From positions 2,696,822 through 2,754,619 of the forward strand of contig BFEA01000030.1 of the NCBI GenBank assembly GCA_003427395.1: DNA of 57,798 nucleotides, read 5' to 3'. The stretch is from Chara braunii. Taxonomy: Eukaryota > Plantae > Charophyceae. The translations under genes were made by a program, and so were the position numbers. The notes under the pieces were generated by a model that did not search any database, was not told the origin of the DNA, and saw only the letters and a program-made list of their open reading frames with translations. The first letter of the stretch is position 1; every line of letters starts with the position of its first letter. Shown here piece after piece: positions 1 through 53,949 of this stretch.

Positions 1-3000
1 TATTTTCTTCGATTTCGCCCTTACCCCCCTAACCAAAAATTATATTTTTTTCGTTTTTTTTTGCCTGATGGGGTGGGGCTGGGGTTGCGCCGCCACGTGG
101 CGCTTCCCGTTTCCCAAACCCCTTTCCCCAGCGGCCGCCACGCGTCCGCGAACACGCACGTCCGCGCGGACGCGTCCGAGGGGTCGCGGACTAGGCCGCG
201 GCCGCGGACTTGGTCGTGCCTGTCCGCCGCTGAGGGGGATTCATAGGAGATGAGGTCCTCCAGACTGATCCGGTCGCTTTGCTATTTGCTTAAGACATTG
301 AAATGGGGCTGGAGATGAGGTCCTCCTGACCGATCCGGTCGCTNNNNNNNNNNNNNNNNNNNNNNNNNNNNNNNNNNNNNNNNNNNNNNNNNNNNNNNNN
401 NNNNNNNNNNNNNNNNNNNNNNNNNNNNNNNNNNNNNNNNNNNNNNNNNNNNNNNNNNNNNNNNNNNNNNNNNNNNNNNNNNNNNNNNNNNNNNNNNNNN
501 NNNNNNNNNNNNNNNNNNNNNNNNNNNNNNNNNNNNNNNNNNNNNNNNNNNNNNNNNNNNNNNNNNNNNNNNNNNNNNNNNNNNNNNNNNNNNNNNNNNN
601 NNNNNNNNNNNNNNNNNNNNNNNNNNNNNNNNNNNNNNNNNNNNNNNNNNNNNNNNNNNNNNNNNNNNNNNNNNNNNNGGTCCTCCTGACCGATCCGGTC
701 GCTTTGCTGTTTGCTTAAGACATTGAAATGGGGCTGGGGATGAGGTCCTCCAGACTGATCCGGTCGCTTTGCTGATTGCCTAAGAGATTGAAATGAGGCT
801 GGAGATGAGGTCCTTCTGACCGATCCGGTCGCTTTGCTGAATCGGTCAGTTTTGCTTGTTGACCAAGGGTCTGACTCTTCTCCTTGTGAGAATAGTTCGG
901 GCTAAGCGTGTTAGTGATTGCATGGGGTTTGACTGAGAACAACTTGGAAGGTTAATGAACTAAGTAAGATACAAGACTTATGTTTTTTGTGATCAAGATA
1001 AGCAAAAGATAAAAACTTTGGATGAACGAACCCTTGTTTTGAATTTGGTTGAATGCATTGTTGATGTGACATGCTTGTTGGCAATGCCTTGTCTTTTGCT
1101 CAAGCTCTGTTTATCTTCTGCATTATAGGGTAGTCTGTTAGTGCTCGCCTTATGCTTGAGCGATAGGCAGGCAGATGCTCACCTTTGTTTTTCGCATTTA
1201 TCTTCTTATGCATGATTGTTTTTTATAGGACTTTGGCTAGCCTCTGAGATAGTGGAAGTTCTAGAAGCCTCTTTTCCTTAGGGGAAGTGCTGCCGAAATT
1301 TCTGCTAAACATTCAGGGTTAGTCAAGTCTCGGAGATGTCAACTAGGATAGGATATAGTTTGGTCTTTTGGAGTCAATAGGAATTTTGGAGGCCTTCCTT
1401 TCTAAAGGAAAGGCTGCCGAAATTTCTACCGAAACCAAAGAGTTAGCTTATTTTCATATATTTTTTTGAATCTCGAGTTTTCTTTTCAGATTTGGTATAA
1501 TAAATATTTTGCGAGCACAGTTCCCGGAAGTGCTGCCGAAATTTTTGGGATTTTCATATCGTTACTGGACGCAGCTGCTAAGTAAGCTTAGAGTGCGTTA
1601 CGGAGTTGAACTCCGTTAACTCGACAGGCGATGCCTGCCTTGATTATTGTGGCGCAGGTCATTGCTACCTGCGAGAGTTTCTTCGAAGTCTTGAGCTTCA
1701 TCAACTGCTGCTATCACCTGATAGCAGGTCGGTTTGCGACTCAACTCCTACCCACCATGATACCCACGCCCAAATGTCTGTGACCCTGTAGGCGAAAGAC
1801 ATTTTCGTGTGAAAGAAAACCTACCCTTGGTACCTCTCTTGAATGACCACCCAAAAGCTGTGCGAATCGGGACGGGCGGATATGCCTTTGTTGAGTGGGG
1901 GTCGGAAAGGGGCGTATGGGACATGAACCTAGGAGCTGAGGAGTTGACCACGTTTTGTAGCATATGCGTGTGGATTTTCATTGGATTCCATGTGTGTGCA
2001 GGTATGTATGGGAGCGATGGCTCGCTCCTGGATTTGAGAGTGGTACGGATGAATGAAGGCAGGGTGTGAGTGACAAGGTTCAACGATGGCTGTGAGAATG
2101 ACTCTCCCTGATTTCCCTGAGACTCGCCTTATTTTATATTTTGCTTTTGCCGCACGCATCTAACGAGCAGGCATGAGTAGCCAAGCGCAAGGTTTAGCGC
2201 TCGACCTTAGATCGGACTAAGACTTAGTTTGGGTACGGCGAATTGCTCGCCAACCCGTGATTACTCGTATTTTCCTTCCGCAGGGGAAGGACGAGCGTAC
2301 CTCGTCTCAAAGTGGTCTTGTTTTTTTTCGATTATTTGTCGGACGTTGGTCCTGAGCCTGGAATTCGAGGTCCTTGTCCAGGACATCCCAGGCTCTGGTC
2401 CAGCACAATAAGTTGTCCCCCTTGAGCCGGATCTGCGCCCCTTGCTTATCGTCATCCACTGCCTAAAAAACAGGGGTGCTGCAAGGGCCGAACAACTTTC
2501 CTTCAGCCGTGCAATATCGTGAAGGAGAAACCCTTCACGATATTTTGCTTTCGACATACGCAACCATGGGAGGTTGCACGGATGTGGGTAACGCATGAAG
2601 CGTCGCCATGATAGCAGACTAAGTGAGAACACATGACTGAACGTTATGGTTCCCATGGCAGTGACATTCTTTTTATGCAACTCTGCACGGACCTCGCTCA
2701 GTCATATTGGCAGTTCTGAGTTATGGGTCAGGACGTATGAAAAAGGGACTAGGCTAATTTGCTTGTATGAGTTACTTTGTTTCGTCGTGTATCACGTGGT
2801 TGAGTTAGGATGTCCTAGTCGACTGACTCGCACGTGGGAGATCAGCGCCCCAGTGTGACGGTTCGCGTATGAGTCCGAGCTAGGCGTGGACCGCGCGTAC
2901 CCCCTATGCTACAGCATACGAGAAACGCCCTCGACTGAGCCACCTCCGCGATTGCAAATAAAAGATTTCACGTGTGGTTCAGTAGCTCGGCGGGGATACG

Positions 3001-3213
3001 CCCACCCAAGAGATGGTGACAGCTCCCGCGGGTGAAGGTAAGTTGTACCTCGCAAGACCCTATCCTGTCGTAGGGGCTCCATGGAGGTATAGCTGACGCA
3101 CTCGGCCGGAGCGGCTCTGCCAATTCCCTTTTCGTGAAGCGACATGCGAATTCTGCCAATCCTGCGTGACGCGGCCAGGAAAGGTTCCCCTAGCGGGGAC
3201 CGTGCGCGCGACA
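1..3213 (+). mobile_element. 3' portion of a giant LTR (family A), related to the LTRs at 13727-18232 and 24351-32086; left boundary not visible
   Basis: Ends GCGCGACA at 3213 (relatives end GCTCGACA). From ~1270 to 3213 it is colinear with 16200-18232, sharing the TGCCGAAATT trimer and near-identical blocks such as ACCGCGCGTACCCCCTATGCTACAGC. No PBS follows, so it is a 3' or solo LTR. Membership of 1-1270 is assumed. Confidence 0.75.
247..850. repeat. ~64-bp tandem repeat spanning an N gap (344-678), two alternating variants
   Basis: Unit GGAGATGAGGTCCTCC(A/T)GAC(T/C)GATCCGGTCGCTTTGCT..TTGCTTAAGACATTGAAATGGGGCT seen at 247, 311, ~679 (partial), 737 and 801. Confidence 0.9.
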
Positions 3214-13406: not shown

Positions 13407-14439
13407 GAAGTTTTTCCCCTTCCGCGCTTGCTAAGGCGCGGGCCCATTGTCCCAAGGTCCATAACCGCCACCGTCTCTTCCCGAAGGACCAAGGAGAAAA
13501 CTTCGAAAAATCAAGAAAGAAGGACCGCCATGCAATTTATCCCCGATCGCTCTGTGTACCACCAATCCCGGTTACGCAGAAGATGGCGCCTTTCAGACAG
13601 TAGTTCGTCACAACGTTGGGCCCCGTTCCCAGCACGAGCTGAACCTTGTCGTTTAAGTGTTAAGATGTCAAGGGACGCTGGACCCGGTTTCCAATAGGTG
13701 CAACTCCCCACCAACGGAATAGCCGCTGTCGGCGCGAATACCCTTACAAGGGTATCCGCCCTGGGTTTTGCAAGTGACAAAAATTAAGTTTGAGTTGGAA
13801 TTTTTGAGTAGACTGCGTGAGTTGTAGCAGTCTATCGGCTGAAAGTTTGACTAGAATGTCTAGAAGCAGAGAGTGAGTGCGCGAGCGAGTTTAAGGCGCG
13901 TGTGATATTTTTTTATTTTTTTTATTTTTTTTATGACTGAAGGGTTGGCGTGATCACTGGCCGGAGCCTTTTTCTGCTGGTTACTTATTTTCTGATTAAG
14001 CTAGGATTAAAAAGATTACGTCCATTGATTAGTGTGCTTACCTGTTACCTATGCGTACGTGGGGAGGACGACATCGACAACGAGAAGGCTTCGAAGTATT
14101 TGTGGTAGGTCTACGCGTTGCGTAGGATAGGTTTGATTTAGGTGTCCGTTAGAGCTAGACCCAGTTTGGGCCTAGCGCTAGCAGTTGCAGTGGCGGATGT
14201 TCATCAAAGAGGTTCACGGATCGAGATCGAGCGGGGGCAACTCGCGGATATCAGAGTAACGCGGAGAAGACCAAGCGGTTGGCGGCGGCGACGCGGGGCT
14301 ATCCTCATTGGTCTACCATTGGAGGTGTCGGAATGTTGCTAGCATATCCTAACGATTAGAAAATCATTAAACTATTTTATTATTGTCATAATTTTTATTT
14401 TTATGCGTCAGGCACTCCTTGACTTGGACGCTACGTCAC

Positions 14440-14770
14440 GGTTAGTGGCCGGCGCGGCGGCCGAGGACCTTGAGTGTGCGCCTCTTTCCGCGGGCCTGTT
14501 CGGGTTCCTGCGCGTACGGGATGCTGGTGGAATTCCTCAGCCTTGCCCGTCTCGAAGCACGGACCAAGGAGTCAATGTGCATACAGGCCGGCGGGTGGGT
14601 AGTGCCAAGTCGAAGGAAACGTGGGAGGCGAGGGCCATTTGTCGGCGTGCCGCCCACCAGACGCGAGTCTGTTGCGGGAGGGTTGAGTGCGTGCGTGCCC
14701 ACTGGGACATAAAAATGGCGGGGCTTGCATCAGGGCGGGCCACGAACTGTAAGGGCCGCCCGCACGATGC
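14440..14770 (+). pseudogene. Diverged 25S (LSU) rRNA-derived segment (D2 end to D3 region) inside the 5' LTR
   Basis: CCCGTCTCGAAGCACGGACCAAGGAGTC (14546-14573) matches 26/28 of the universal LSU motif CCCGTCTTGAAACACGGACCAAGGAGTC. Flanks are colinear with LSU as recalled: GGATGCTGG upstream, GGGTTGAGTGCGTGCGTGCC..GGGAC..AAAATGG downstream. Confidence 0.8.
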
Positions 14771-16209
14771 CCTTTCCCCACCGCGGCCTTCAGAGTCCCC
14801 CTCTGAGCATCTGTTAATGCAAACCAAGAGTCGTACCGAGGCTGATTCATCAAGGCCCATGCTCCAAGGTAGGCCTTAGAGCAGGCCCCATCCTCAGTCC
14901 GCGGCTAGCCGTATGATTGGGGCCTGGCTGTTGGGAGCCTGAGGGGGCAACGGGCTCTGAGCAGCGTAGGAAAGGCTGTTGCGACCGCCTCCCGGGGAAT
15001 GACCGAACGGGGGGAAGGGCTGGCCGGGCGGCGCAACTCAGAGCAACAACAGAATGGTTGGTGGAAGACGGCGGGCGGACCTGGACGGGGAACCGCACCG
15101 GGTACATGCGCGGAAGGGCCAGCGGTATATCCCAAGGTAGTGGGCGACGGGCCGGAGGGAGCAGGCTGGAGGCTATAACGGGCCGTAGCGGACTGGTAGC
15201 GGAACCAGCCGGGTGCAAGGCTGTGAGCCAGGCTGTCGGCCACTGCGTAGGGGTGAAGGACTATCCGGGTCACCCGACGGGAAGTCTTACTAAGTGCTAC
15301 AGCCGTCGGGCAGGTCGCGGAGGGGTGGGCATTGTCGGGTTGAAGAAAGCGAGGAGCGCAGCGGTGAGAGGCGGCAGGAAGGAGGCGGATGAACTTGGCC
15401 GACGAATCGCGCCAGGTGCGTGCACATTGGGGAACGGGGATTGGCAGAGGAGTGAGGACGAGGAGACTCGCACATGCTGGAACCCAATGGGTATAAATTG
15501 GCTATACTATATTACTATTCTATCTACGAACAGGCTAGCCAGGCGCGGGCTCCATAAGAATGGACAGCCTGACTATAGCTTATCGTAATTCGAAGAGAGT
15601 ATAATCAAGAGATATAAATGAAGGTAAACTTGGGCAGGCTGAACAACATTCTAAGATGAGCGACTCAGCCCTATGTTCATTTGGAAGACTAAGTGCAGAA
15701 AGGTATATATAACTTGGCTATTTAAACAGTTCAGGGCGACTAGAGTGGTCTAGTCATGGGCCCAAAAAAAAGAGAAGTAGTAGTGGCCTCTGTTTGTGTA
15801 TACTTGGCTAAGTCAGAACGCTCCATAAGCTTAGGTATTCTGACTTTGGGTCTGGCTAAGTTGGGCGCGCTCTGTAAGTCCAGGTGGCCTGACCTATGCC
15901 TTATGTAAGTTGGGTATAATGGGATAACTCATAGAGAGAGCATGAACTATAATTTGTTAAAAGACTTGGGATGGTGAGAGTACTTACCTTTGTGGTTTGG
16001 CCTGCATGCGACTGAGTGAGGCTACTACTTGGTTTGAGTTTGAGGTTGATAGGTAGTTGCTTTAGTCGCTCGCCACGTGCTAGAGCTATAGGAGTTAGTT
16101 TCAATTCCTGCATTTTCTGAGCTAAGTTTTTTTTTCACTTAGATCAATTCACACATTTTCTGAGATTTTTTGTTGTGCTTGGCCTTGTATAAATTTTGGT
16201 AAGCTACTT

Positions 16210-16500
16210 TCTCTACAGGAAGCGCTGCCGAAATTTCTACAGATCCAAGGAGTTAGTCATTTTTTTGACTCTTCAAAGTTCAACTAGTCTAAAGTTCATA
16301 TATGGCTTAGTAACTATCTGGAAAGTCTCATTTTCTAAAGGGAGTGTTGCCCAAATTTTTGCTAACTCAACGAGTTAGACAAAATTGGACTTTGAAAGTT
16401 CAAAGACTATTTATGTTTTCATATTCGGACTGATATAAATTTTGAAAAGGCACTTTTCCTACGGCAAGCGCTGGCGAAATTTTCTTGATGTAGAGGAGTT
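16210..16500. repeat. Three ~123-bp subrepeats with core GGAAGYGCTGCCGAAATTT
   Basis: Cores at 16226, 16348 and 16472; equivalents at 30072/30194/30318 and 1291/1415/1534. Confidence 0.75.
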
Positions 16501-18234
16501 AGATTATATTTTGACAGGTTTTGATTCTGGCAATTCACCCTGAATAGGGGAGATTTTAGGTTATATTTTGACAGGTTTTGATTCTGGCAATTCACCCTGA
16601 ATAGAGGAGATTCTGCCATTAGTCTACCTTTGTTTTTGGCACTAGCTTAGAGGCAGGCTTAGACTTAGTTGGCGGGTAACTTTGAGTGAGAATGTGGTAT
16701 GGATATTCATCCCCCTTATGCTGATAACTTAGCTTGGGCATTGACATGTCTTATGGTACAGGCCTCTCTTGGACATTCGATTCGGGACTTGGACTAGATT
16801 CAGCTTGATCCTAAGGGGATCATCCTCTGTTATCACTGATAACAGGTCGGTTGACGATTCGTCGGTTTACGATTCAACTCCAATTCACTCCTGCCACTCA
16901 ACCTAAAGGCTTTAGCCTCGTGATTGAACTGTTTTGTTGTGTTTTCACCCGGATTTTATTGAATGGTCATCCAACAAAAGTACTGAGTATTTATTTGAGA
17001 GTTTCACGAGTGAGGCTTGTATGGCTAAAGCGAGGGACATGAGTGTAAGGAATGGTTGAAGTTGACCCCATGTAGTGCGTTGACTTTTGATTTAATCTTT
17101 GATGTGATTGCAGGTATGGTTGTGGTTCGGCTTCCGGATGTGGCTGCCTGCGATTACATACATATATGGTTGAGAGGAGTCTCACTGTGACTGTGAGAAG
17201 TGATTGTCCTATATAAATAAGCCTTATGTATATAGTTATATGTGTCTTAGGTATGTGCGCGACTTACTTAGATCGTGCACAAGGGTTAACCAAGCTATGA
17301 CTTGAGAGAAAAAGGGAGATCTCCTTTTATCCTTTGCTTCTTAAAGATTTCCATGGCCGGACGTTGATCCTGGGCCGAGATTCAAGGTCTTTGTCCATGA
17401 CATCCCAAGCCCTAGGCTCTACAGGGAAGGAATCTGCCCCCGTGCAAAGCCTATTTGCCTTGCCTACCGAGACGCCTCGACCAAAGGCCAGAGGTCTCGC
17501 GGCAGCTGCACGACTATTCCTTCAGCCGTGCAATGCCGTGAAGGATTAGACCCTCACGACACTTCGAGTCTGACACTTGAGTGTCATAAGCGGTACTCGG
17601 ATCCACGAAGGACCGCTTGATTATGGGCCCTACATAGTACGTCATCATTGCGACTGCTTGCGTACGCTTGCATTGCGAGGCGGTATGCCCTGCGTCCGCG
17701 GAGTTTAGTACTGATTCTCGCGCACGACGCTTATCTGATTTCCGCGTTGGAAAGTTATGGGATGGCTACTGAGGGACTAAGAGCGTTGTCACGTGTTTGT
17801 ATTGCGTCGTTTGTGCGTATGTGTGTGTGCGTTTTGTTTTTTGTGTTCGTAAAGTGGTGTACGCGTGGTGTGTGGGATGCGTTCTAGTCGACCGACGACG
17901 GACCGCGCTTGGGACTTCAGCCCCCCAAGATGTCGGTTCGCATGAGGGTCTGATAGGCGTATTACCGCGCGTACCCCCTATGCTACAGCGCACGAGAAAT
18001 GCCATCGGCTGGTCCACCTCTGCGATTGCAACTGATTAGCTTTCGTACTGTGGACTGGTAGCTCGGCGGGGATACGTCCACCGATGGGAGGTGATAGCTC
18101 CCGTAAGGTGGAGGTAAGTTGTGCCTCGCGTAGGCCCTATCCTGTCGTAGGGGCTCGCGAGAGCTATGACTGGTGCACTCGGCCGGAGGGTTCCGCGCCG
18201 CCATGTGCGATGCCGGACCGATGCGCTCGACAGG

Positions 18235-18252
18235 TGGCACCGTTGCCGGGGA
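18235..18252 (+). promoter_or_regulatory. Primer-binding site for tRNA-Asp(GUC), Athila-type
   Basis: TGGCACCGTTGCCGGGGA, 2 nt after the LTR-terminal CA; 17/18 match to TGGCGCCGTTGCCGGGGA, the complement of the plant tRNA-Asp 3' end. Confidence 0.9.
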
Positions 18253-20488
18253 TAACGGCTACCTACCGTTGTCCCTGGTGGAACGACATCCGAGTATGAA
18301 AGTGAGAAATAGGCAACTCGGAAGTTTTGATAGGCTTGTATGAGTGATTGGCTAATATTTTGACTATCGCTGGGAGTACCGTGAGGACTGAGGGGTCCCT
18401 AGAAACCGAGCCTTGATTCGAGGCAGGTTGATAATCCGTGGAGAATAATTGCATCTGCTCTATTGACCGGATTAGGAGAAAGTGGTTGATCGTATAAGGT
18501 ATTGGATAGAGCATGAAGTGAGGGTTAGTTCTGCGAGTGGGGTTTGAGTGATGCAGTAAGGGTTGCTTGAGATCGATAAGCGCCTTGACTATACGCAGTG
18601 AGCACTGCCTAGTATGCGATTAACTGGAGTTGAAAGGCTCTTTGACTTTAATGATTGATGAGTTTGGGTAATGCCTTGTAGGCTCGATTCGGCTAGGAAT
18701 GAGCAAGGTGGTACTGGCGTTGCTAAGTATGCCTGTTATTGGAGTTAAAGGCTAATTGACTCGTTACGTGATTGTTGTGCAGAGCCTGCCGTGGAAGATA
18801 ATCAAGTTAAGGCGGAGCGTCTCTCCTAGTCATGTGACTCCTACGTTAGAGGAAGTTGCCGATACGAGGGCAGCACGGGTGAGGGGATGATTGATAAAGT
18901 GCGAAGTAAGGAGGTTAATTTTAAGGATATTTCCTTGAGCTCAGGCTGGGATATGATATGATAGGTAGTACGGCCAGTACGGTGCTTAAACTCGTCGATA
19001 GCGTGAGTTGATGATGATTTGAGTCGCTTGCGGACTGTTTGGCTAACTATTGATAGATCTCGAGAAGTAGTGGCCACTAGGATAGCGGTTTGGCTAGTCC
19101 GAAGAGAGACCTATGTGTTAATTATATGTGATATATGTATATATGGCATTTATGATTGTTTGTTTAGTTGTCTCTATATATGTACTTTTATTATGTTCTG
19201 TTTGATGTTTGATTGATGGTGTATGTATGGATTGCCTTTCACAGACACATAGATTCTGCGTTTCACATTCACCCCTGGCATGGGACCAGGGGTGAATGGG
19301 GTGACTTACTTCTGTGGAAGGTGGTTCTTTCGAGAAGGAGTTAGTCGGCGTGTATAATTTGTCCTTAGTGGAAGTGCATTCTTGAGTTGTTACTCCCTCG
19401 ATGAGGCTTAAGGAAGCGGTTATTCGTCTCGGAACTGATAGTGAGACCCATGCCGGAACTATGCTGCTGGTCCATTAGTGGGGTGTTGTTGTCTTTCCTG
19501 TAATGGGAGAGTAACTACATTATCTGTTGAGGGAGGAGGAAAGGGCTTGCTACCTCACTGAGGCTGTGATGGCCAGGTGGAGCAGCTACTGCTTAGTGAG
19601 AGCGGTCCAGGAGTAGCGATCTGGGTTCGTCTCGCATTAAGCAAGTAAGGGCACAGACTCGCTATCCATTGTCCTGACAGGTATGAATAGGCCTGACTAT
19701 CTGACCATGATTAGTCAAGCGCTGAAATGAGAGAGGGTTGCGGTGAGGCTTGATCTTTAGAGCGGGGCTCGGGAGTCAAGATGTTATCTCAAGAGGATCA
19801 CACCGCCCCTCTGTATTATATGCTTCGCTTAAGAGATGAAGGGGGTATCAATTGTATCATGCTAATCACTCATTGTAAGTCTTAGTCTGTTTTGTATAAA
19901 CTAAGATATGTTTTGAGAACTATGTTGTTATATAGCTGGCAGTTGAGTTGGCTTTGTGTGGTTATGTACAAAGCATACTGGGCTCTTCAGTTACCACCCC
20001 TGCAGATAAGTTGTGCTTATTACGTTGTAATCGTGATTACGAGTATATCCTAGTTATTGTGGGTTGTACTGCATTTTGGGATGAAGGTTTGGGGTACTCA
20101 CCTATATGACATGTATATTGTATTTTTCTAGATGGTGAAAGTGATATCTGATTAAGGTCGGAGTTATGACTCGAAGGCTTTATCGACAGGTATTTGGTGT
20201 TCTACTGCCGATGAATATTTGTGTGAAGGACTCTCTTCGGTATAGCCGATTGTTGGAATAGACTTTCTACGTGCGTATGCAATAAGTATCGGGATGATCT
20301 TAGCAGGGCATCATTGGCGTCCATTCTTTGAGTAATGTACCATGTTGTATGAATAGTCACCATTAGGAAGTCGGTGTTTGTGCAAGGGGTATTACCATGG
20401 TATATTACCATCGATATCTTCCTAAATTGGGCGGTCGCAAACGCTGGAAGTGGATGGTTTTAGGGAAAGATGATCTGAGAATAAGGGT

Positions 20489-21656
20489 TTGGGGATAAGG
20501 TGGTACAGTATGATTGCCAATAGAATAACGGAAGGCGCATGCTGGACGTTTTTTCTGTCATGGGCAGAGCCCAGACCGGAGCAAAGGCAACTCAGGATGC
20601 CTTATGCGAAGGAAGATCCCAGTGTGACCCTGCCTGTCAAGGGGGAAGATGGGCTTGAGATTTTCTTGCCGAGGCGAGTCAGGGAGGGAGAGTACATCTC
20701 TTCCTTGTGGGGCGCACCGATAGGCAAGGATATTTTTACCTAGATCGAGTCCGACTTTGATGATGGCCAGGACGGTGCGATTGTAAGAGTGACTTTGTAT
20801 GCGCCTTCTTCGTTTTGGGCTTTACATGGGATTGAGCTGGCGCTTGGGCATGAGAGCCTGTTGGCGAGACCTTTGAGGGTAGCTGAGGGAGCTGAAGCAA
20901 AGTGGACGAATGACAGGGTCCAGGAAGGAGAGGAGCAGGTGGAGACCCGTATAGAGGTCAAGCATGCTGAAGAGTTTGCACTTCCCTCAGTCCCATTGCG
21001 AGTTGTCCTGCCAGAATTCATGGTAGAGGCATGTTTTGGGGGACAGGCGAGGGTGGAAGACGCTGCAGAGGCTGCCGTGAAGGTGCGAGAATGGGGATAT
21101 GCACAGTACATGTGCGAGTTGATAAATGGGTTGTATCTAGAACGAAGGTTCTTGTCCCATAGCCAGGAACTTAGGAACCTGGCCACTGTAATGGATGCTT
21201 ATGCAAGTTCGCACAACCCAAATGAAGGAGTTGTAGACTGGGATGAGGTTCGTGCCACAGTTGGCCGATAGGGAGTGTCCATGTATCCTGCTAGGGGGTG
21301 TTTTTCACAGACAATGTGCACATAGGTGAAGATAAGGGCTAGGGTGGCAGGCCAACCAGTTGTATGGACTGAACCCCTTTATGTTAACTGGCAAGATGCA
21401 TCAGGATGGGTTGCAGGGGTAAGCTGTGAAGAAGCCAGGTCTGGGTGGGATGGGCCTGGAAGTTTGAGGAGACTGCAGAGATAAATAAGAAAACCCCATT
21501 TGAATAGATACGACGTGCAAACGGAAGGGGGTTTTCATTCATAATGGTTCGGTAAGACGGCCCGAATTATAGGCAAAAGGGACCCCAATAGAATAGTTGT
21601 ATATGGGGGGGGTATGTTTGGTCTGCATCGGATCGTGCTATCGATATGTTTCTAGT
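20489..21656 (+). pseudogene. Decayed ORF of unknown function in the interior of the giant element
   Basis: ORFs 20489-20743 and 20789-21271 share a frame that continues to 21656: ~390 codons with only five internal stops, all TAG or TAA. Confidence 0.55.
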
Positions 21657-22876
21657 AACTAGGGCTGGGAGATGAGTTTTAAATAAGGGTTTATCTCCCT
21701 AGACCTATTGATTGAGAAAAGAAGAGACGAGACCTAGGCTCTGTTTTAGATCCGAATGGTTGTATATATGAGAGAGATCTGAGGGGCTTGAGGGGAAGCC
21801 TTGATGTGGGAGAAGGTAGACCCCCTAACCTAGGGGTGCATTGCGGGAGACTTGTGTATATATGATGGATCATAGGAGGCTCCAGGGTGGGGCTGGGGAG
21901 ATACCTTTCTAAGGCTCCTGCGACTAATTGAAGGTAGGATAGCAAGAGCATGGCCCAAGCATGGAAACGAGCCTCACGCATGGACGGATTGCTGAAGGCA
22001 AATATGGATGAGGGTGTGGCTTAGAGGGCCCGCTTGTGTGCTTGGGAGATCATGCGAGATTTGACTCCTTCTAGATCGATGTTCTAGAAATATTGCCCTA
22101 GGATACAGGGGAGGGGCTATGTCTTGAAGGATGGATTTCCTCATGGCCATACTACCCGGAACTACAAGGGCGTATACATCCATGCATTTGTGTATAGAAT
22201 GTGCGTGGAACCTTGGTAGGCTTGGACTTAAGTTTCAAGTAAGCGGGGACAATATGTACAGTGTTTTGATTCTAGACCAAATTTTAGTCTCGAGCGAGTG
22301 AGACACGGGAGGGGCTTGGTCCTACTTTGTCCAAGAGTTAAATATGTCTGGAGTTACTTGGGTCCCTCTGATTTGAGGGGTATGATTACATCATGACCAG
22401 GACTGTGTTAGTATTAGTTCTTGTTAAGGAGGGCGCGATTTTCGTTGTGTGATGCTAGTACCAGGTTGAGTTCGAGATTGTTCGACTCCATGTGTACATA
22501 TGTAATTCGAGACCATTCGGTTTGCGTTTGAGTTGGGATATCATACCCCTGGGTATATATTGAATTGAGATCTTTATCTGAGGCTATTCCTTGTATATGA
22601 CGATCGCGATCATTCTCACATGTGTGGTTTTATCCTAATGTATGATGATTCTGTATGAGAGAAGTATGAGGAACATCTCATGAGTTGTGTGGATTTTTGT
22701 GAGAATGAGTGGATGTGAATTGTCTACTCTTCGGTATACTCGTGCGGTCTGCTTACGAGCAGGACAGGGCCGAGTATAAGGAGAGGAAGTGCGGTCTGTT
22801 ATTGTGAAAGCGTGAGAATCCTAAGGGATTTTACGAGTCTCTGAGACTCGAATACTTACCATGTCGGATGTTGTAC

Positions 22877-23045
22877 GGTTGGGTTGCGAAGAGGGCCCAT
22901 AAGCAGGTCCCTCAGTTTGAGTTGTGTCGCGGTTGAGTTGCGAAGAGGGCCCATAAGCAGATCCCTCAGTTTGAGTTGTGTCGTGGTTGGGTTGTGGAGA
23001 GGACTCATAAGTAGGCCTCTAAGTTTGAGTTGTCTTATGGTTGAG
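22877..23045. repeat. Three copies of a 54-bp tandem repeat
   Basis: GGTTGRGTTGCGAAGAGGGCCCATAAGCAGRTCCCTCAGTTTGAGTTGTGTCG at 22877, 22931 and 22985 (third copy more diverged). Confidence 0.85.
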
Positions 23046-25064
23046 ACCCCTTCAGATTAAGGAAGGTGGTAATGTAGGTTATTGGGAGACTCATCTCCAG
23101 AAGGAAGGTGTTTTAAGAAGGGTCGCGTGATAGCCCATCCTAAAGAGAGAGGGATGGCTGGGAGACCTATTGGGAGGGACCTCCTTCGTGTGAAAGGTGG
23201 CTAACAGATTTAAGGGCATGATAAGCAAAGTTTGAGTTGATAAAGTCTGACGAAAGGAACCAGAATTACGGATTGGATCATTGGTGGAATTGAGAAGGTC
23301 GCAAGTCAGTGCATAGTCGTGGGATATGTGATCTGTTGTCTCTGATCAAGTCAACGGGCCACGGCCTTGTGTGTGAGCCTGGCAGTGGACCTGTTTGTGA
23401 TTGTGAAAAGGAGCCATGCCTTCTATGGCGTCCCATAGGGAGCTGGTAAACGTTTTTAAAGTGAGACAGACCCCTGCGTAGTCCCGCAGTGGGCCTGTAG
23501 TCTGTTTTGCGACGCACCGTCTAGACACTTGTGCTAATCCCAAGGCATATTAAGGAATACCAAGCTAAATGGTAAAGGTTAGCACCTCTAGGGCGCAACC
23601 CCTATTGGATGACTGCAACCCAACACAACCTGGTTGCGGGCCCACGTCTACCAACAGGGTAAGAGTTTAAGGGGTTATGCATGCCCCAGAGAAATTACCC
23701 CGGTGGGATGGCGGGGGATATGAGTCGAGACTTTGGGTAGTCCTGATTCAATGCTTATCAGGAGAAAACCTATCGTTGCATAACCAACGAAGGAACTGCC
23801 GTTAAAATAACAATGCGGTAGGCCGTAGATCTGGCTTGATCAACCAGACTATGGTGGACCGAGATGGAGACCTAGCACTTCTTTACTAGACAGCAGAAGA
23901 GGCGGAGATGAAATTTGAGTACATATATATGTATATATGCCTGATTGGGAGGGTTTCGGCGAGGAAGGCGAGAGTGCCTTCTGAGGTCTCGTTTAAGGCC
24001 TGCGTCCCTGGGTATGACTCTGCTTACGAGAAGGAGTCTAACAGGGGCACTCAATGAGAAGCCGGCGTTTGTCTAGGACGAAGGAGAGAGGACGGTTTAG
24101 AGGGCCTTTGGAACTTATGTTGTAGTATCGATGTGTAATACACAAGAGTCCTAGTGTCAGGACGATGGAGACTCAGGTAAAAACCCTGGCGGCATATAGT
24201 TGTGTGGGGACGGATTGTTGGAGGCCTCGAACCTGAGTCTGTTTGCTAATCGGATTGGTTCCTTTCTCGTCAGCATTTGGAGTGCGGATGAATTTATAGC
24301 TTCTGATTTAGCGAAGCGACGGGGACGTCACTTAATAGGGTCCGGTAAGTTGTCAGCGCGAATACCCTTACAAGGGTATCCGCCCTGGGTTTTGCAAGTG
24401 ACAGAGATTAAGTTTGAGTTGGAATTTTTGAGTAGACTGCGTGAGTTGTAGCAGTCTATCGGCTGAAAGTTTGACTAGAATGTCTAGAAGCAGAGAGTGA
24501 GTGGGCGCGCGAGTTTAAGGCGCGCGTGATATTTTTTTATTTTTTTTTATTTTTTTGATGACTGAAGGGTTGGCGTGATCCCCGGCCGGAGCCTTTTTCT
24601 GCTGGTTACTTATTTTTTGATTAAGCTAGGATTAAAAAAATTACGTCCGTTGATTAGTGTGCTTACCTGTGACCTATGCGTATGTGCGGAGGACGGCATC
24701 TAAACCGAGAAGGCTTCGAAGTATTTGTGGTAGGTCTACGCTTTGCGTAGGATAGGTTTGATTTAGGTGTCCGTTAGAGCTAGACCCTGTTTGGGCCTAG
24801 CGCTAGCAGTTGCAGTGGCGGATGTTCATCAAAGAGTTTCAGGGATCGAGATCGAGCGGCGGCAACTCGCGGATATCAGAGTAACGCGGAGGAGACCAAG
24901 CGGTTGGCCGCGGCGACGCGGGGCTATCCTACTTGGTCTACATTGGAGGTGTCGGAATGTTGCTAGCATATCCTGACGATTAGAAAATCATAAAACTATT
25001 TTATTATTGTCATAATTTTTATTTTTATGCGTCAGGCGCTCCTTGACTTGGACGCTACGTCAGG

Positions 25065-25393
25065 GTTAATGGCCGGCGCGGCGACCGAGGACCTTGAGCG
25101 TGCGCCTCTTTCGGCGGGCCTGTTCGGGTCCTGCGCGTACGGGATGCTGGTGGAATTCCTCGGCCTTGCCCGTCTCGAAGCACGGACCAAGGAGTCAATG
25201 TGCATACAGGCCGGCGGGTGGGTAGTGCCAAGTCGAAGGAAACATGGGTGGCGCGGGCCATTTGTGGGCGTGCCGCCCACCAGACACGAGTCTATTGCGG
25301 GAGGGTTGAGTGCGTGCGTGCCCACTAGGACATAAAAATGGCGGGGCTTGCATCAGGGCAGGCCACGGACTGTAAGGGCCGCCCGCACGATGC
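25065..25393 (+). pseudogene. Diverged 25S rRNA-derived segment inside the 3' LTR
   Basis: Same LSU motif at 25169-25196; counterpart of 14440-14770. Confidence 0.8.
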
Positions 25394-26259
25394 CCTTTCC
25401 CCACTGCGGCCTTCAGAGTCCCCCTCTGAGCATCTGTTGTTGCCACCGAGAGCCGTACCGAGGCTGATTCATCAAGGCCCGTGCTCCAAGGTAGGCCATA
25501 GAGCAGGCCGCATCCTCAGTCCGCGGCCAGCCGTATGAGTGGGGCCTGGTTGTTGGGAGCCCGAGGGCGCAACGGGCTCTGAGCAGCGTAGGAAAGGCTG
25601 TGGCGACAGCCTCCCAGGGAATGACCGAACGGCCGGAGGGGCTGGTCGGGCGGCGCAGCACAGAGCAACGGCAGAATGGGTGGTGGAAGACGGCGGGCGG
25701 ACCTGGACGGGGAACCGCACCGGGTGCATGCGCGGAAGGGCCAGCGGTATGTCCCGAGGCAGTGGGCGACGGGCCGGAGGGAGCAGGCTGGAGGCTATAA
25801 CGGGCCGTAGCGGACTGGTAGCGGAACCAGCCGGGTGCAAGGCTGTCGGCCAGGTTGTCGGCCACTGCGTAGGGGTGAAGGACTATTTGGGCCGCCCGAC
25901 GGGAAGTCTTACTAAGTGCTACAGTCGTCGCGCAGGCCTCAGACGGGTGGGCATTGTCGGGTTGAAGAAAGCGAGGAGCGCAGCGGTGAGAGGGGGCAGG
26001 AAGGAAGCGGATGAACCTGGCCAACGAATCGCGCTAGGTGCGTGCACGTTGGGGAACGGGGATTGGCAGAGGAGTGAGGACGAGGTGACCGAGCGGGCGC
26101 TGCATAGAGCGGAGGTGAGGAGGACGAGGCCGGCGGATAGACCACAGCGGGGTGCTGCCGGGACGTTGAGGTGAGTGAACCGAGACGTAGGCCTGCACCA
26201 AGTGCTTTCGGGGATGGAAATGGCAGAAAAGGGGATCGGGCGCAGTCAGGGGAACTTAG

Positions 26260-27165
26260 CTCGCTCGATTCGTAACGGAATCGAGCGGGAAAGATCACTA
26301 TTTTAGGGGGTTTGTGGTCATGTGAGCGTGATAGTTGGGTTAGATTTGGCATTAGAGTAGCGGAATAGGAGTTAGAGGTGAAAGAGGGTGCAACGAGCTA
26401 TGGTGGAGGGGAGGAAAGACGGAGGGAGAAATCGAGATGCCACTCGATTCCTGATGGAATCGAGTGAGGAGGGTGCCAAAGTTGGGGTTTAAGGGAGATG
26501 CGAAATCAAATTCGTCGTTAGTTGGGGCGATCAGTGAGTATATAAAAAGGGTAGGAAGAAAGTTAGTGCGTGGGAACTTTGTGAAAGTGGCTATGGCCGA
26601 ATGAGGAAAGCGAAGGTCTCGCTCGTTTCCTGATGAAAACGAGCGAGCGTGGAGTCATTTCGGAGGCTATGAGGGAGGGCGAACCCTTATGTGATGTTAG
26701 ATTAGGAAGATGGTTAGTGTATGAGCAGTTAGAAGTGAGAGGGGCCGTGCTGAGCTATGGCGGAAAAGCGAGCATGGTGAAATGAAAGTCACGTAGTTTC
26801 CTCGATTCTTAGCAGAATCGAACAAACTGAGAGGCATTTTGGGGGTTCTGGAGATCGGCGAGGCTGAATACGAAGTTAGATTTAGTAGAGAGTTAGCGTA
26901 GAGGAAGTTAGTAAGAAGGGGGCCTGCGCGGAGAGTCGGGGGAGAGAGCGACAGCGGGAACTAAAAACGAGTATCCTGCTCGTTCCTACACGGAATCAAG
27001 CAAGGTAGGAGGGTAAGCAGAAGTTTGTGGATACTACGAATCCGATGACGTGGTCGGATTAGTTGAGGGTGAGGATTCATTGCCGTGCGGTCCGCAGACT
27101 GCGACGGGGGGGGGGTGAGCTCGAAAAACAGAATGTATCCGCCTGTGTTCTAGCGGAATATTCAT
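26260..27165. repeat. Diverged 179-bp tandem array anchored on the palindrome CTCGATTC-N6-GAATCGAG
   Basis: Palindromes start at 26264, 26443, 26622, 26801 and 26979, with a degenerate sixth near 27143. Weak shared motifs between them (GTTAGATT, GCTATGG). Confidence 0.85.
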
Positions 27166-28789
27166 TCGATTTTGTTCATCGCTGGAGGTAGTGAGAAGGT
27201 GGCTGTGCGTTGGAAACCCACCTGTTAGCCGGTGCGTCGCTCCGCCAGCCGATGGAAGAATCCCCTTCGCTCTGCCCCTCGAGTAGGCACTCGACAGTTT
27301 TCGTGCACCCGACTATGTCTTAAGTGAGAGATTCATCCGATCTTGCTCGTCGTATCACCGGTGACAGTGGGAGGCCGACTGCAGGGTTGGGGACTTACCT
27401 GGTAGGGGGCCGCTCGGGTCGGGATGTCTGTGCTGCCTAGCTCAGTAGGCAGCAGTCTGCGGAGTCCTATCGTGATGTGAGATGGCCGGGTGCTGATTTG
27501 CCCCGTGTTGGAGATGTGGACGTTCCCGACTGGGCTCTGCTGCTACCCTGCTGCCCGTGCCCGGTTGCCTTCACCAGAGGTTCCTTGCAGAGCGATGTGC
27601 GCGCTGTACGGTGTAGCCGTATTGCTGCTATTGCCACGTGCTCTGCCGCTTCGCTATCGTGCCGTCCGTGGTTGCTGCTCGTGCACCTGGGGGTTGGTTG
27701 CCTTGCTGTTGGTGCCCTGTGCCGCACTGTTGCCCCTGGCACGGCCGGTACTACGCCATTTCTGAGTTATTTGTGGCCCATCAGGTGGGAGGAGGCAGCG
27801 ATTGTGTTGTTGCGCACGGCCGCCCGGGCTTGGGCTGTTCGATGTGGTGTGCTGCTACGGTGCCTTTCCTTGTTGCACACAAGTGTTGAACGCGCTGGGG
27901 CATTAGCGTTATTGCCATTGCCACTGCATTTCGGGCGTTGTGCGGTTACAGCGAAGTGCTAGACTGTTGCTGGGTATAATTACTAGACATAGTTGTTGGG
28001 CACCAATGTTGAGCGGACTGGTTTAGCCATTGAAGGTTAACTTTTTAGGCTGTGTAGCGGCAGACCGGTCAAAAGCTACAGCGAGAGAATAAGGGAGGAG
28101 GGGGCGTACTCTATGGAACTCAGTCTGACTAGGCTGTGTAGTGAGGGTTTGGACTAGGGACGCGGCATCGTAGCTTGAGGAAGAGGCGCTATTGCTGCGA
28201 ACTAGGAGGTCATCAGAAAGTCAGCAACTAGCGGTTTGACTTCAGTTGACCAGCGACCGCGTGCTTTGGTCATCATTGCGGGGCCCTCAGGCGACTGAAG
28301 GTATCAAGGCCCTCTCGCACGAGTTTGAGGGCACCCTTCTTGTATCTGAGCGACTCAAACTTTCTCTCTCTGCCCCTCTTACTCTAAGTCTAGTCTGTTG
28401 GTTCTGAGAGGAAGGCGGCAGGCGGGATTGCAACCCGTAATCCGCGCCAAGGCATTCGTGGGAGGCCCGCCCCACTGATTGCGGGAGCTCTGCCGGGACT
28501 CAGGAGAAGTCCTGGAGGCAGGGAACTGAGTGGTAATTCCCTGACTCCGCTTATAAACCCAACTATAACCCCTATCTGTACGTTCTTCTATGGTTTGACA
28601 GGGTGTATTGCGTGAATCCTGTACTCTAATCTTGGTTTGACTTTCAGGACTTGAACTCAGTTGAAGTAAAGGAATGCGTGTGAAATGTCAGTTTCAGAGT
28701 TGTTGGTTGCCTGAAAGCAGATTATGAACAAAAAGGGTTGCATCTGGGGAAAGGTTGGGAGGAAGGTAGTATTGTGTGCGGGCTGATTG

Positions 28790-29300
28790 GGTCGTTAAGG
28801 CTGGGAGGTCCCCATAAGTTTGGGGNAGCCCAGCGCTTTGTTTATTTTGGTTTGCATGAAGCATCAGGCNGCTCTATAAGTTTAGGTAGCCTGAAGCTCT
28901 GAGGCTGGGAAGTTCCCATAAGTTTGGGGAGACCTGGTGCTGTGAGTTGCGTGGAGGGTCAGGACGCTCTATACGTTTAGGTGTCCTGACTGCTCTGACT
29001 TGCGAGGAGCTTGACTGCGATTGACTTTCAGGAACTCGGGGCGCTCAATAAGTTTTGGTGCCTTGGGTTGCCTTGTTTTCTTTGGGTTTTCTTAGGCTTC
29101 TTTGTTTTTCAAGGGAGGGGCCGAGCTGTTCTGTAAGTTTAGGTGGCTCTGTCTCTTCCTGCAATTGTTTTAAGGGGATGAACCTGACAAAGGGCAGACC
29201 CTTCTGTAAGTTCAGGGGGTTTTACTGGATGCCACACACATGAAGGCTCAGAGAGAAAGGAACCAGGTGGAGAGGCAGACCCTTCTGTAAGTTCAGGGGG
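28790..29300. repeat. Degenerate short subrepeats (~50-100 bp spacing) with core CYRTAAGTTYRGG
   Basis: About eight recurrences, such as CCCATAAGTTTGGGG, CTCTATAAGTTTAGG and TCTGTAAGTTCAGGGG; further copies near 29400, 29670 and 29720. Confidence 0.65.
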
Positions 29301-32300
29301 TTTAACTCAAAGCCTCGCACATGCTGGAACCCAATGAGTATAAATTGACTATTCTGTATTACTATTCTATCTACGAACAGGCTAGTCAGGCGCGGGCTCC
29401 ATAAGATTGGACAGCCTAACTGTAGCTTATCGTAATTCGAAGAGAGTATAATCAAGAGGTATAAATGAAGGTAAACTTGGGCAGGCTGAACAACGTTCTA
29501 GGATGAGCGGCTCAGCCCTATGTCCATTTGGAAGACTAAGTGCAGAAAGGTATATATAACTTGGCTATTTAAACAGTTCAGGGCGACTAGAGTGGTCTAG
29601 TCATGTGCCCAAAGGGGAAGAAGTAGTAGTGCCCTCTGTTTGTGTATACTTGGCTAAGTCAAAACGCTCTATAAGTTTAGGTATTCTGACTTTAGACCTG
29701 GCTAAGTTGGGCGCGCTCTGTAAGTTCAGGTGGCCTGACCTATGCCTTATGTAACTTGGGTATAATGGGATAACTCATAGAGGGAGCATGAACTATAATT
29801 TGTTAAAAGACTTGGGATGGTGATAGTACTTACCTTTGTGGTTTGGCCTGCATGCCACCGAGTGAGGCTACTACTTGGTCTGAGTTTCATGTAGATAGGT
29901 AGTTCCTTTAGTCGCTCGCTACGTACTAGAGTTGTAGGAGTTAGTTTCAATTCCTGCATTTTCTGAGCTAAGTTTTTTTTTCACTTAGATCAATTTTCTC
30001 ATTTTCTGAGGTCTTTTGTTATACTTGGCCTTGTATAAATTTTGGTAAGCTACTTTCTCTACGGGAAGCGTTGCCAAAATTTTTACAGAACTAAGGAGTT
30101 AGTCATTTTTTTGACTTTTCAAAGTTCAACTTGTCTAAAGTTCATACATGGCTTAGTAAAAATCTGGAAAGTCTCATTTTCTAAAGCGAGTGCTGCCCAA
30201 ATTTTTGCTAATTCAGGGTGTTAGACAAAATCGGATCTTGGAAATTCAAAGACTATTTCTGTTTTCATATTCGGACTGATATAAATTTTCAAAAGACATT
30301 TTTCCTACGGGAAGCGCTGCCGAAATGCTTGATTTAGAGGAGTTAGATTATATTTTGACAGGTTTTGATTCTGGCAATTCATCCTGAATAGGGGAGATTC
30401 TGCCATTAGTCTACCTTTGTTTTGGGCACTAGCTTAGAGGCAGACTTAGACTTAGTTGGCGGGTAACTTTGAGTGAGAATGTGCTATGGAGGTTCATCCC
30501 CCATATGCTGATGATTTAGCTTGGGCATTGACCTGTCTTATGGTACAGGCCTCTCTTGGACATTCGATTCGGGACTTGGACTAGATTCAGCTTGATCCTA
30601 AGGGGATCATCTTCTGTTATCACTGATAACAGGTCGGTTGACGATTCGTCGGTTTACGATTCAACTCCAATTCACTCCTGCCACTCAACCTAAAGGCTTT
30701 AGCCTCGTGATTGAACTGTTTTGTTGTGTTTTCACCCGGACTTTATTGAATGGTCATCCAACAAAAGTACTGAGTATTTATTTGAGAGTTTCACGAGTGA
30801 GGCTTGTATGGCTAAAGCGAGGGACATGAGTGTAAGGAATGGTTGAAGTTGACCCCATGTAGTGCGTTGACTTTTGATTTAATCTTTGATGTGATTGCAG
30901 GTATGGTTGTGGTTCGGCTTCCGGATGTGGCTGCCTGCGATTACATACATATATGGTTGAGAGGAGTCTCACTGTGACTGTGAGAAGTGATTGTCCTATA
31001 TAAATAAGCCTTATGTATATAGTTATATGTATCTTAGGTATGTGCGCGACTTACTTAGATCGTGCACAAGGGTTAACCAGACTATGACTTGAGAGAAAAA
31101 GGGAGATCCCCTTTTATCCTTTGCTTCTTAAAGATTTTCATGGTCGGACGTTGATCCTGGGTCAAGATTCAAGGTTTTTTTCCAGGACATCCCAAACCCT
31201 AGGCTCTACAGGGAAGGAATCTGCCCCCGTGCAAAGCCTAGTTGCCTTGCCTTCCAAGATGCCCATACCAAAGCCGGAGGTCTCACGGCGGCTGCACGAC
31301 TATTCCTTCAGTCGTGCAATGTCGTGAAGGATTAGACCCTCACGACACTTCGAGTCTGACACTTGAGTGTCATAAGCGGTACTCGGAGGACCGCTTGATT
31401 ATGGGCACTACATAGTACGCCATCATTGCGACTGCTTGTGTACGCTTGCATTGCGAGGCGGTATGAGTCAGCCCTGCGTCCGTGCGGTTTTATACTGATT
31501 CTCGCGCACGACGCTTATCCGATTTCCGCGTTGGAAAGTTATGAGATGGCTACTGAGGGACTAAGAGCGTTGTCGCGTGTTTGTGTTGCGTCGTTTGTGC
31601 GTATGTGTGTGTGCGTTTTTGTTTTTGTGTTCGTAAAGTGGTGTGCGCGTGGTGTGTGGGATGCATCCTAGTCGACTGACGACGGGCCACGCTTGGGACT
31701 TCAGCCCCCCAAGATATCGGTTCGCGTGCAGGGCCGATAGGCGTATTACCGCGCGTACCCCCTATGCTACAGCGAACGAGAAACGCCCTCGGCTGGTCCA
31801 CCTCTGCGATCGCAATTGATTAGCTTTTGTACAGTGGACTGGTAGCTCGACGGGGATACGCCCACCGATGGGAGGTGATAGCTCCCGTAAGGTGGAGGTA
31901 AGTTGTGCCTCGCGTAGGCCCCATCCTGTCGTAGGGGCTTGCGAGAGGTATGGCTGGCGCACTCGGCCGGAGCGGCCTAAGGAAGTTCCATTTGTGTGTT
32001 CGAGGCAAGGTTGGTCCAACTCCTGTGTGACGCGGCCGAGAGGGTCCCGCGCCGCCACGTGCGGTGCCGGACCGATGCGCTCGACACCGCTCCCCAGGTG
32101 TTAGTGGTGTCTGCTCTTATCAGCATCACTAACACAGACTGGGTCCTGCTCAAAATGCTGTCACCGGAGGCCACATCCCTGCATGACAGGATCCTGCCTC
32201 TGCATTGGGAAGAAATCAGGAGGCTGATCATCGGGAACGACCAAATAACTAAGACAGTTAACTACTATGACACCCCAGATAAGGTGGGCTGGAAACAGGT

Positions 32301-53787: not shown

Positions 53788-53949
53788 AAAAAAAACAAAG
53801 ACTCCCTACTCCTAATCAAACTTATCCCCTACTTGTCCCACCGTCCTACCTAAGGTTCCCTTTCTATACCTTGCTTTTTTTGTGCCCCTTTGGTCATGGC
53901 CTTTGGTTGGTGAATGAGGTGAGCGGGGAAGGGGGTGTGAGGCAGTTGG

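Follow-up and report, generated by a model that had tools for sequence, protein, structure and literature searches.

Both LTRs of an 18.4 kb LTR retrotransposon in Chara braunii carry two pieces of sequence derived from large subunit (LSU) rRNA, one in the sense of the element and one antisense to it. We consider it likely that these pieces are decayed 25S/LSU fragments from the host lineage, which were gained before the last transposition of the element and have been passively copied since as passenger cargo, without a function of their own. The LSU origin of the sense segment in each LTR, its presence in both LTRs and its orientation were confirmed over approximately 250 bp, and this segment has been retrotransposed at least once. 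The two LTRs have their diverged state in common, which shows that the fragments were already in the ancestral LTR before the last transposition. The LSU cargo is therefore older than the insertion and has been propagated with the element, as the original prediction had claimed. All positions below are those of the window, the whole 57,798 nt stretch of DNA that was analysed.

Architecture of the retrotransposon

One complete LTR retrotransposon insertion occupies 13727-32086 on the plus strand, and is either non-autonomous or fully degraded. Its features are as follows.

13723-13726: target-site duplication CCGC, left copy; the same four bases occur at 32087-32090
13727-18231, plus strand: 5' LTR, 4505 bp, TG...CA (self-BLAST against 24351-32086; ends read)
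18232-24350, plus strand: internal region, 6.1 kb, no gag/pol detected (ORF list and Pfam scan)
18234-18250, plus strand: PBS-like site TGGCACCGTTGCCGGGG, 2 nt past the end of the 5' LTR, beginning with TGG
24351-32086, plus strand: 3' LTR, 7736 bp (self-BLAST; ends read)
32087-32090: target-site duplication CCGC, right copy (read from the sequence)

Both LTRs begin with TGTC and end with CGACA, and alignment by self-BLAST showed the pair to be 94.3% identical over 4433 aligned positions. The PBS-like site is a candidate assignment, in which TGGCACCGTTGCCGGGG would be complementary to plant tRNA-Asp. No clear polypurine tract was seen just upstream of 24351. The internal region contained no ORF longer than 160 aa, and Pfam matched none of the nine ORFs scanned there and none of the four scanned in the LTRs (0/13 in all); no gag/pol coding capacity of an autonomous element was thus detected in the internal region. 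Tandem repeats were observed in the internal region at 22876-23033 (54 bp, 2.9 copies) and in the LTR at 16499-16626 (57 bp, two copies).

The 3' LTR contains two stretches that are absent from the 5' LTR, at 26090-29310 (3.2 kb) and 31973-32043 (71 bp). The borders of the first show neither TG..CA ends nor a clear target duplication, and for this reason the 5' LTR may have lost this stretch, as opposed to the 3' LTR having gained it by insertion. No known RNA was identified in 26090-29310 by Rfam at E<=1. The loose ends of many contigs of the family, and of RNA reads, past 18188 resemble the 71 bp stretch, so most members of the family own these 71 bp and the 5' LTR represents a deletion.

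Divergence between the LTRs was 1.3% over 600 bp at 16727-17326 (approximately 30514-31110 in the 3' LTR), compared with approximately 4-10% in all other 300-bp bins. This low-divergence stretch could be due to local gene conversion between the LTRs or to constraint. At an assumed 1e-8 substitutions/site/year, for which the actual rate of this lineage may differ, the 5.7% difference between the LTRs gives a rough insertion age of approximately 3 million years. Two other repeats were observed in the window. Approximately 300 bp at 2808-3115 match the LTR's 3' terminal part (17896-18188 and 31659-31976) at 78% identity and have the appearance of the terminus of an LTR that is related but more diverged. 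A satellite with a period of 53 bp occupies approximately 53818-55900 as a long tandem array, in which at least 37 overlapping register copies were counted.

LSU-derived pieces in both LTRs

The pieces derived from LSU rRNA, and the evidence by which each was placed, are listed here.

14462-14715, plus strand: sense LSU-derived piece, 5' LTR copy, from the end of D2 to approximately position 822 of the Rfam LSU model (nhmmer, local covariance model and host-type reads)
14546-14573, plus strand: conserved 28-mer core, 5' LTR copy (26/28 against the eukaryotic LSU consensus)
14771-14869, minus strand: antisense LSU-derived piece, 5' LTR copy, approximately positions 1400-1505 of the Rfam LSU model (nhmmer with single loci, E 0.003; z 15.5)
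25085-25338, plus strand: sense LSU-derived piece, 3' LTR copy (nhmmer and local covariance model)
25394-25492, minus strand: antisense LSU-derived piece, 3' LTR copy (nhmmer profile, E 0.012; single loci, E 2e-4; z 18.7)

The sense piece starts approximately 715 bp into each LTR, in the sense of the element; the original prediction had placed it in this orientation at approximately 0.7 kb. Its core is the 28-mer CCCGTCTCGAAGCACGGACCAAGGAGTC, present at 14546-14573 and 25169-25196, which agrees with the consensus of 59 eukaryotic LSU fragments in all but two of its positions (26/28), exactly as predicted. These 59 fragments came from metagenome contigs and were fetched by the inner 16-mer of the 28-mer. 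Two of the reference loci were checked with the Rfam eukaryotic LSU model, and scored 820.6 bits over the whole locus (L009) and 216.9 bits over a 231-nt stretch (L005). The inner 16-mer occurs exactly twice in the window, for a chance expectation of 0.03 at up to two mismatches.

Similarity to LSU rRNA extends beyond this core. An nhmmer search with a profile of 48 LSU fragments matched 14457-14708 (E 3.1e-10) and 25080-25331 (E 3.9e-10), and nothing else in the window. A local covariance model of 166 positions and 46 pairs, for which the Rfam structure at model positions 647-822 was mapped on 40 LSUs, matched 14545-14711 with 51.2 bits and 25168-25334 with 52.2 bits (E approximately 1e-15), covering the model from its first to its last position. 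When the core was excluded, the 200 nt downstream still scored above dinucleotide shuffles, with z 6.7-7.3 (best of 107 references). The upstream flank scored weakly against foreign LSUs (z 0.4-3.2), as expected since the D2 segment is variable, and it matches host-type reads. Past approximately 14715 no LSU similarity was found on the sense strand (z -0.1 to -0.9). Of the colinear, diverged flank of approximately 300 bp that had been proposed, colinear LSU similarity over approximately 250 bp was therefore borne out, while an extent of 330 bp was not.

Other searches were silent or not significant. With the 28-mer masked, nhmmer returned the correct places only at E 6.5-8, which is not significant alone. 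Rfam cmscan with the full LSU model gave no match in the whole window at the gathering score, and none in 13500-16500 or in 14400-14800 (401 nt) at E<=10; a scan of the whole 3' LTR at E<=1 returned no LSU, U6, tRNA or 5S. We attribute the full-model result to the limits of a 3401-position model on a short, decayed fragment. The original prediction had made its case for an LSU origin depend on a hit beyond the 28-mer, and here the full Rfam model finds nothing, whereas nhmmer and the local covariance model both detect the flank. The copies of the sense piece differ from each other at 13/313 sites, compared with approximately 65-70% identity to foreign LSUs and approximately 86% to the host-type sequence over 104 nt. 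The two LTR copies are thus closer to each other than to rRNA, in agreement with the earlier claim.

The antisense piece is an addition to the original prediction. It was found by nhmmer of the window with 20 long rDNA loci, taken one by one, several of which independently matched at 14771-14869 and 25394-25494. The reverse complement of 14771-14869 gave a local alignment score of 32, compared with 12.9 +/- 1.2 for shuffles, at approximately 69% identity over 101 columns; over both copies the scores were 32-35 (z 15-19), and the sense strand of the same stretch scored at the level of shuffles. This piece is approximately 100 bp long, lies 55 bp downstream of the sense piece, and comes from a different region of the LSU. 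Each LTR therefore carries both a sense and an antisense LSU piece. No further rDNA-like piece was found in the window by BLASTN and nhmmer of whole rDNA loci.

Donor, copy number and expression of the captured sequence

The donor was examined with sequencing data carrying the same species label. Two DNA runs, as contigs, and two oligo-dT RNA runs, as raw reads, were mapped on 13700-18300 at a likeness of at least 88%. This revealed a sharp spike in depth at 14470-14623, where deep DNA contigs cross-map on 14478-14538. DNA depth in the spike was 65,594 and 36,807 in the two runs, compared with approximately 14-22 for single-copy contigs, and RNA depth was 601 for first mates mapping to the minus strand but 1.9 for the plus strand. 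Nearly all records in the spike carry fixed letters that differ from the LTR, at 14475-14477 (TGT>CAC), 14489 (C>G), 14497 (T>C) and 14513 (C>T), with further fixed letters at 14516 (A>T), 14528 (T>C) and 14530 (G>A). Past 14538 these records continue as TATCCTGCCCGTCTTGAAACACGGACC, the canonical LSU core, and the canonical core that they reach includes CCCGTCTTGAAACACGGACC. Since they are abundant, strand-biased and homogeneous and lead into a canonical core, we read the spike records as the 25S rDNA and rRNA of the host itself, although in the strict sense a very abundant rDNA-like repeat could also give such records.

The LTR copy is identical to this host-type sequence at 89/104 positions (approximately 86%). 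The first half of the 104-nt stretch had no match in 117 foreign LSU loci, as expected because D2 is lineage-specific. The match of the D2 part to the host-type reads therefore identifies the 25S of the host lineage as the donor. The 117 metagenome loci include no LSU reference near to the host, and decay downstream of the core was gauged at near-universal columns only.

Mapping also showed that the 5' LTR is a mosaic. Positions 13727-13783 and approximately 15400-18231 are common to a very abundant family, with summed contig depths of 1e4 to 1.2e6, whereas the 1.6 kb between them (13784-15393) is low-copy, with summed depths of 54-1900 over 13854-15393 and of 54-78 over 14624-14777. In each DNA run 80 contigs leave the sequence at 13783, where the other LTRs of the family diverge; loose ends were also seen at 13727. 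This 1.6-kb block, low-copy and variable, lies close to the LTR's 5' end and is probably U3. The window's own letter at 14516 had a DNA depth of 37-42, equivalent to approximately 2-3 copies, and the variants of a depth-14 contig at 14737 and 14745 are exactly those of the 3' LTR. Together this suggests approximately 2-4 copies of the cassette, roughly both LTRs of the 13727-32086 element and little else; these figures are summed Logan contig depths at a minimum of 88% identity, which are not a true copy number and leave copies more than 12% diverged uncounted. The LSU cassette is not a hallmark of the family, most of whose LTRs do not have the 1.6-kb block. Many contigs of the family also show internal deletions, for example from 16236 to 16491 (approximately 254 bp skipped).

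Next to no RNA could be assigned to the cassette. In the oligo-dT libraries at most 3 of approximately 1490 reads carried the LTR's letter at 14516, so the RNA-seq coverage that had been proposed as a check did not reveal transcripts with the LTR's own letters beyond these. In the same libraries, the only ones used, 14624-14777 and 14932-15239 had no RNA coverage (depth 0), and as far as 15393 the depth was otherwise no higher than 1.4. The common parts of the LTR, 13727-13783 and 15400-18231, had oligo-dT RNA reads on both strands, at depths up to 186.

The cassette lies in a G+C-rich island. G+C content is 61-69% over 14400-15450, with a dip to 54-59% at approximately 14750-14900, compared with 46% for the window, and the island reaches approximately 600 bp past the LSU pieces. 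It contains chance ORFs on both strands, and Pfam returned nothing for the two plus-strand ORFs scanned. Apart from the host-type spike, the island is not rDNA-like at a minimum of 88% identity. A 158-aa ORF across the cassette (14403-14879) was rejected as spurious: it has no Pfam match, is interrupted in the 3' LTR, and found no homologue among 5.8 billion proteins.

Route of entry, decay and comparison with known elements

The fragments would most likely have entered the LTR by aberrant template switching of the reverse transcriptase onto co-packaged rRNA; alternatively, recombination with another LTR lineage that already bore such scraps could have brought them in. After entry they would have been copied passively with the element and have decayed. 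rRNA is an abundant candidate template for such switching. Entry of foreign sequence into LTRs by abnormal template switching has been described for Veju and BARE-2 (PMC13317346, PMC1950507).

Acquisition at the level of DNA, without a direct template switch, is the strongest of the rival explanations, and we think it improbable. An orphan rDNA fragment or an rRNA pseudogene may have been inserted or used as repair filler, or the block 13784-15393 may have been recombined from an LTR family bearing LSU sequence. The mosaic LTR, with its low-copy 1.6-kb middle between parts of a very abundant family, would suit this route, as would the patchwork look of two distant LSU regions in opposite orientations. 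However, a non-exhaustive look around the pieces revealed neither a target duplication nor a poly-A tail, and no termini of an element. The data fit both the DNA-level route and template switching by reverse transcriptase, and the outcome of either is the same, a passive cargo.

The decay of the pieces is uneven. The 5' 104 nt of the sense piece are approximately 86% host-like, and the remainder is approximately 60-69% LSU-like; the antisense piece is approximately 69% LSU-like, without cross-mapping of rDNA at the 88% threshold. A single capture followed by uniform decay fails to account for this pattern. The pattern would be explained if part of the LSU-like stretch had later been rewritten through copy-choice with real 25S rRNA, or through gene conversion from rDNA. 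We also considered a broader and more speculative reading, to which we give some credence but which we do not favour. The giant LTR elements here may have a hypervariable slot towards the 5' end of the LTR, with a 57-bp terminus on one side and a 2.8-kb 3' part on the other, both of them conserved. During reverse transcription this slot would repeatedly take in co-packaged host structural RNAs, in the present case LSU rRNA, and the LSU stretch could then be partly rewritten by homology-guided copy-choice with 25S rRNA. Such a rewrite would account for the host-like 5' 104 nt beside the more diverged rest.

The original prediction raised the possibility that the captured sequence is retained as a structured module (for mimicry, nucleolar targeting or silencing evasion), and it likened the case to the 5S sequence of Cassandra. 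We regard a module of this kind, maintained by selection as an LSU equivalent of that sequence, as very unlikely. The sense orientation in both LTRs and the conservation of the core at 26/28 positions speak for it, as does some retention of structure: for the LTR pieces the structure-aware model scored 10-13 bits above a sequence-only model, of six double changes in helices 2-9 four keep a pair, and three double changes in the 13-bp long-range helix preserve pairing. However, the 51-52 bits of the LTR pieces on the local covariance model are under half of the 115-132 bits of genuine held-out LSUs. Among columns with a conservation of at least 90% across the 59 LSUs, the LTR piece keeps 24/26 in the core, 21/36 in the next 200 columns and 16/36 beyond, so that 42% of near-universal columns downstream of the core are changed. 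The LTR copies keep 46-47 of 77 Rfam pairs, whereas the same positions in 59 genuine LSUs are 91.8% paired with strong covariation. By helix, 34/46 pairs are kept in helices 1-9, 6-8 of 12 in helix 10 and 2/8 in helix 13, and helix 12 is deleted. Measured against the eukaryotic LSU family of Rfam (RF02543), the piece has neither a score at the gathering level nor a preserved secondary structure in the covered region.

Tests for selection on the piece gave the same picture. The minimum free energy of 14457-14770 was -128.2 kcal/mol, compared with -136.6 +/- 5.3 for shuffles (z +1.57), so it folds no better than shuffled sequence. Differences between the LTRs numbered 13/313 in the sense piece and 239/4120 elsewhere (p 0.26), which gives no sign of slower divergence in the piece. 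Surviving pairing is what is expected of a partly decayed copy whose donor had its own covarying helices, and we see no evidence of continued selection, although a weak constraint on pairing would be compatible with these data. The proposed structured module thus fails on its decay, its loss of helices, its folding, its unreduced divergence and the lack of RNA with LTR letters in the oligo-dT libraries, and the cassette is moreover low-copy and absent from most LTRs of the family. To our knowledge, LSU rRNA is a Pol I product with no internal promoter to donate, and the promoter is the point of the 5S sequence of Cassandra.

A chance or compositional resemblance, in which a G+C-rich LTR stretch holds a short LSU-like word, can be discarded: although the full Rfam LSU model is silent even at E<=10 and the general profile is not significant with the 28-mer masked, such a resemblance is refuted by the profile (E 3e-10), the local covariance model (E approximately 1e-15, colinear over 166 model positions), the flank (z 6.7-7.3), the adjoining antisense piece and the cross-mapping of host-type reads on the D2 part.

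The likeness to Cassandra is therefore limited. Cassandra, Ajax and Helenus are miniature, multi-copy elements whose LTRs contain sequence of 5S or tRNA origin, including a functional Pol III promoter (Kojima 2024, PMC10886601; Maiwald et al. 2024, PMC10853983). The present element resembles these (TRIMp3) in being non-autonomous and in carrying host structural-RNA-gene sequence in both LTRs, at the same offset, copied with the element. However, in Cassandra, Ajax and Helenus the internal Pol III promoter is conserved, is used by the element and tracks changes in the host promoter, whereas the cargo here is LSU sequence made by Pol I. No Pol III module was found: Rfam returned no 5S, tRNA or U6 in the LTRs at E<=1 (the 5' LTR up to 16500) or in the window at the gathering score, and ARAGORN found no tRNA. 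The present element is 18.4 kb long with LTRs of 4.5 and 7.7 kb, and its cassette has, by a rough estimate, approximately 2-4 copies and no expression. A module of the Cassandra or TRIMp3 type would be conserved and near-intact among copies, unlike the two scrambled and decayed pieces here, which most LTRs of the family do not have. On promoter, conservation, size and copy number alike, the view of this element as an LSU counterpart of Cassandra is not supported.

A further parallel is provided by the Veju_L TRIM and BARE-2 (Sabot and Schulman 2007, PMC1950507; PMC13317346) and by the host gene fragments in Bs1, where an unrelated RNA joins an LTR element during reverse transcription and is then propagated. 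Uptake by template switching of this kind would explain both the presence of the LSU pieces in both LTRs and the mosaic LTR. The donors in Veju_L, BARE-2 and Bs1 are RNA of other retroelements or mRNA fragments, with no LSU rRNA donor listed, whereas the donor here is LSU rRNA and the mechanism is inferred.

LSU sequence is also part of the mobile element body in SINE28 of mammals, which is derived from 28S (Longo et al. 2015, PMC4994717; Table 2 of PMC10946416). SINE28, however, is a non-LTR element (a SINE) that LINEs mobilise, and it forms a defined family with multiple copies, whereas the present fragment is located in the LTRs of one individual LTR element. Like the orphan fragments of rDNA and the rRNA pseudogenes scattered in genomes (Robicheau et al. 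2017, cited in PMC10946416), the pieces are decayed and apparently silent; unlike such fragments, they went through a retrotransposition cycle, and the D2 match shows their origin in the host lineage. The table of rDNA-derived sequences in transposable elements in that 2024 review lists 5S, IGS and one 28S-derived SINE, and no LTR element with LSU sequence (PMC10946416). The same review considers that most rDNA-related modules probably bring no benefit to the transposable element (PMC10946416).

The present case is thus of a known kind, the capture of foreign RNA into an LTR, and its LSU rRNA donor is a small addition to the table of that review. Taken alone the element carries little weight; its contribution is a case with LSU rRNA among the known routes by which foreign RNA is acquired by LTR retrotransposons. 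It also gives reason for caution, as an rRNA-like match in a repeat-rich algal or plant genome can represent LTR cargo instead of an rDNA locus. If the tentative reading of a hypervariable slot were true, the uptake of cargo would be recurrent and lineage-wide, and not a single accident. If pieces of host RNA were confirmed in LTRs genome-wide, they would form a natural record of the RNAs that such elements have co-packaged and copied.
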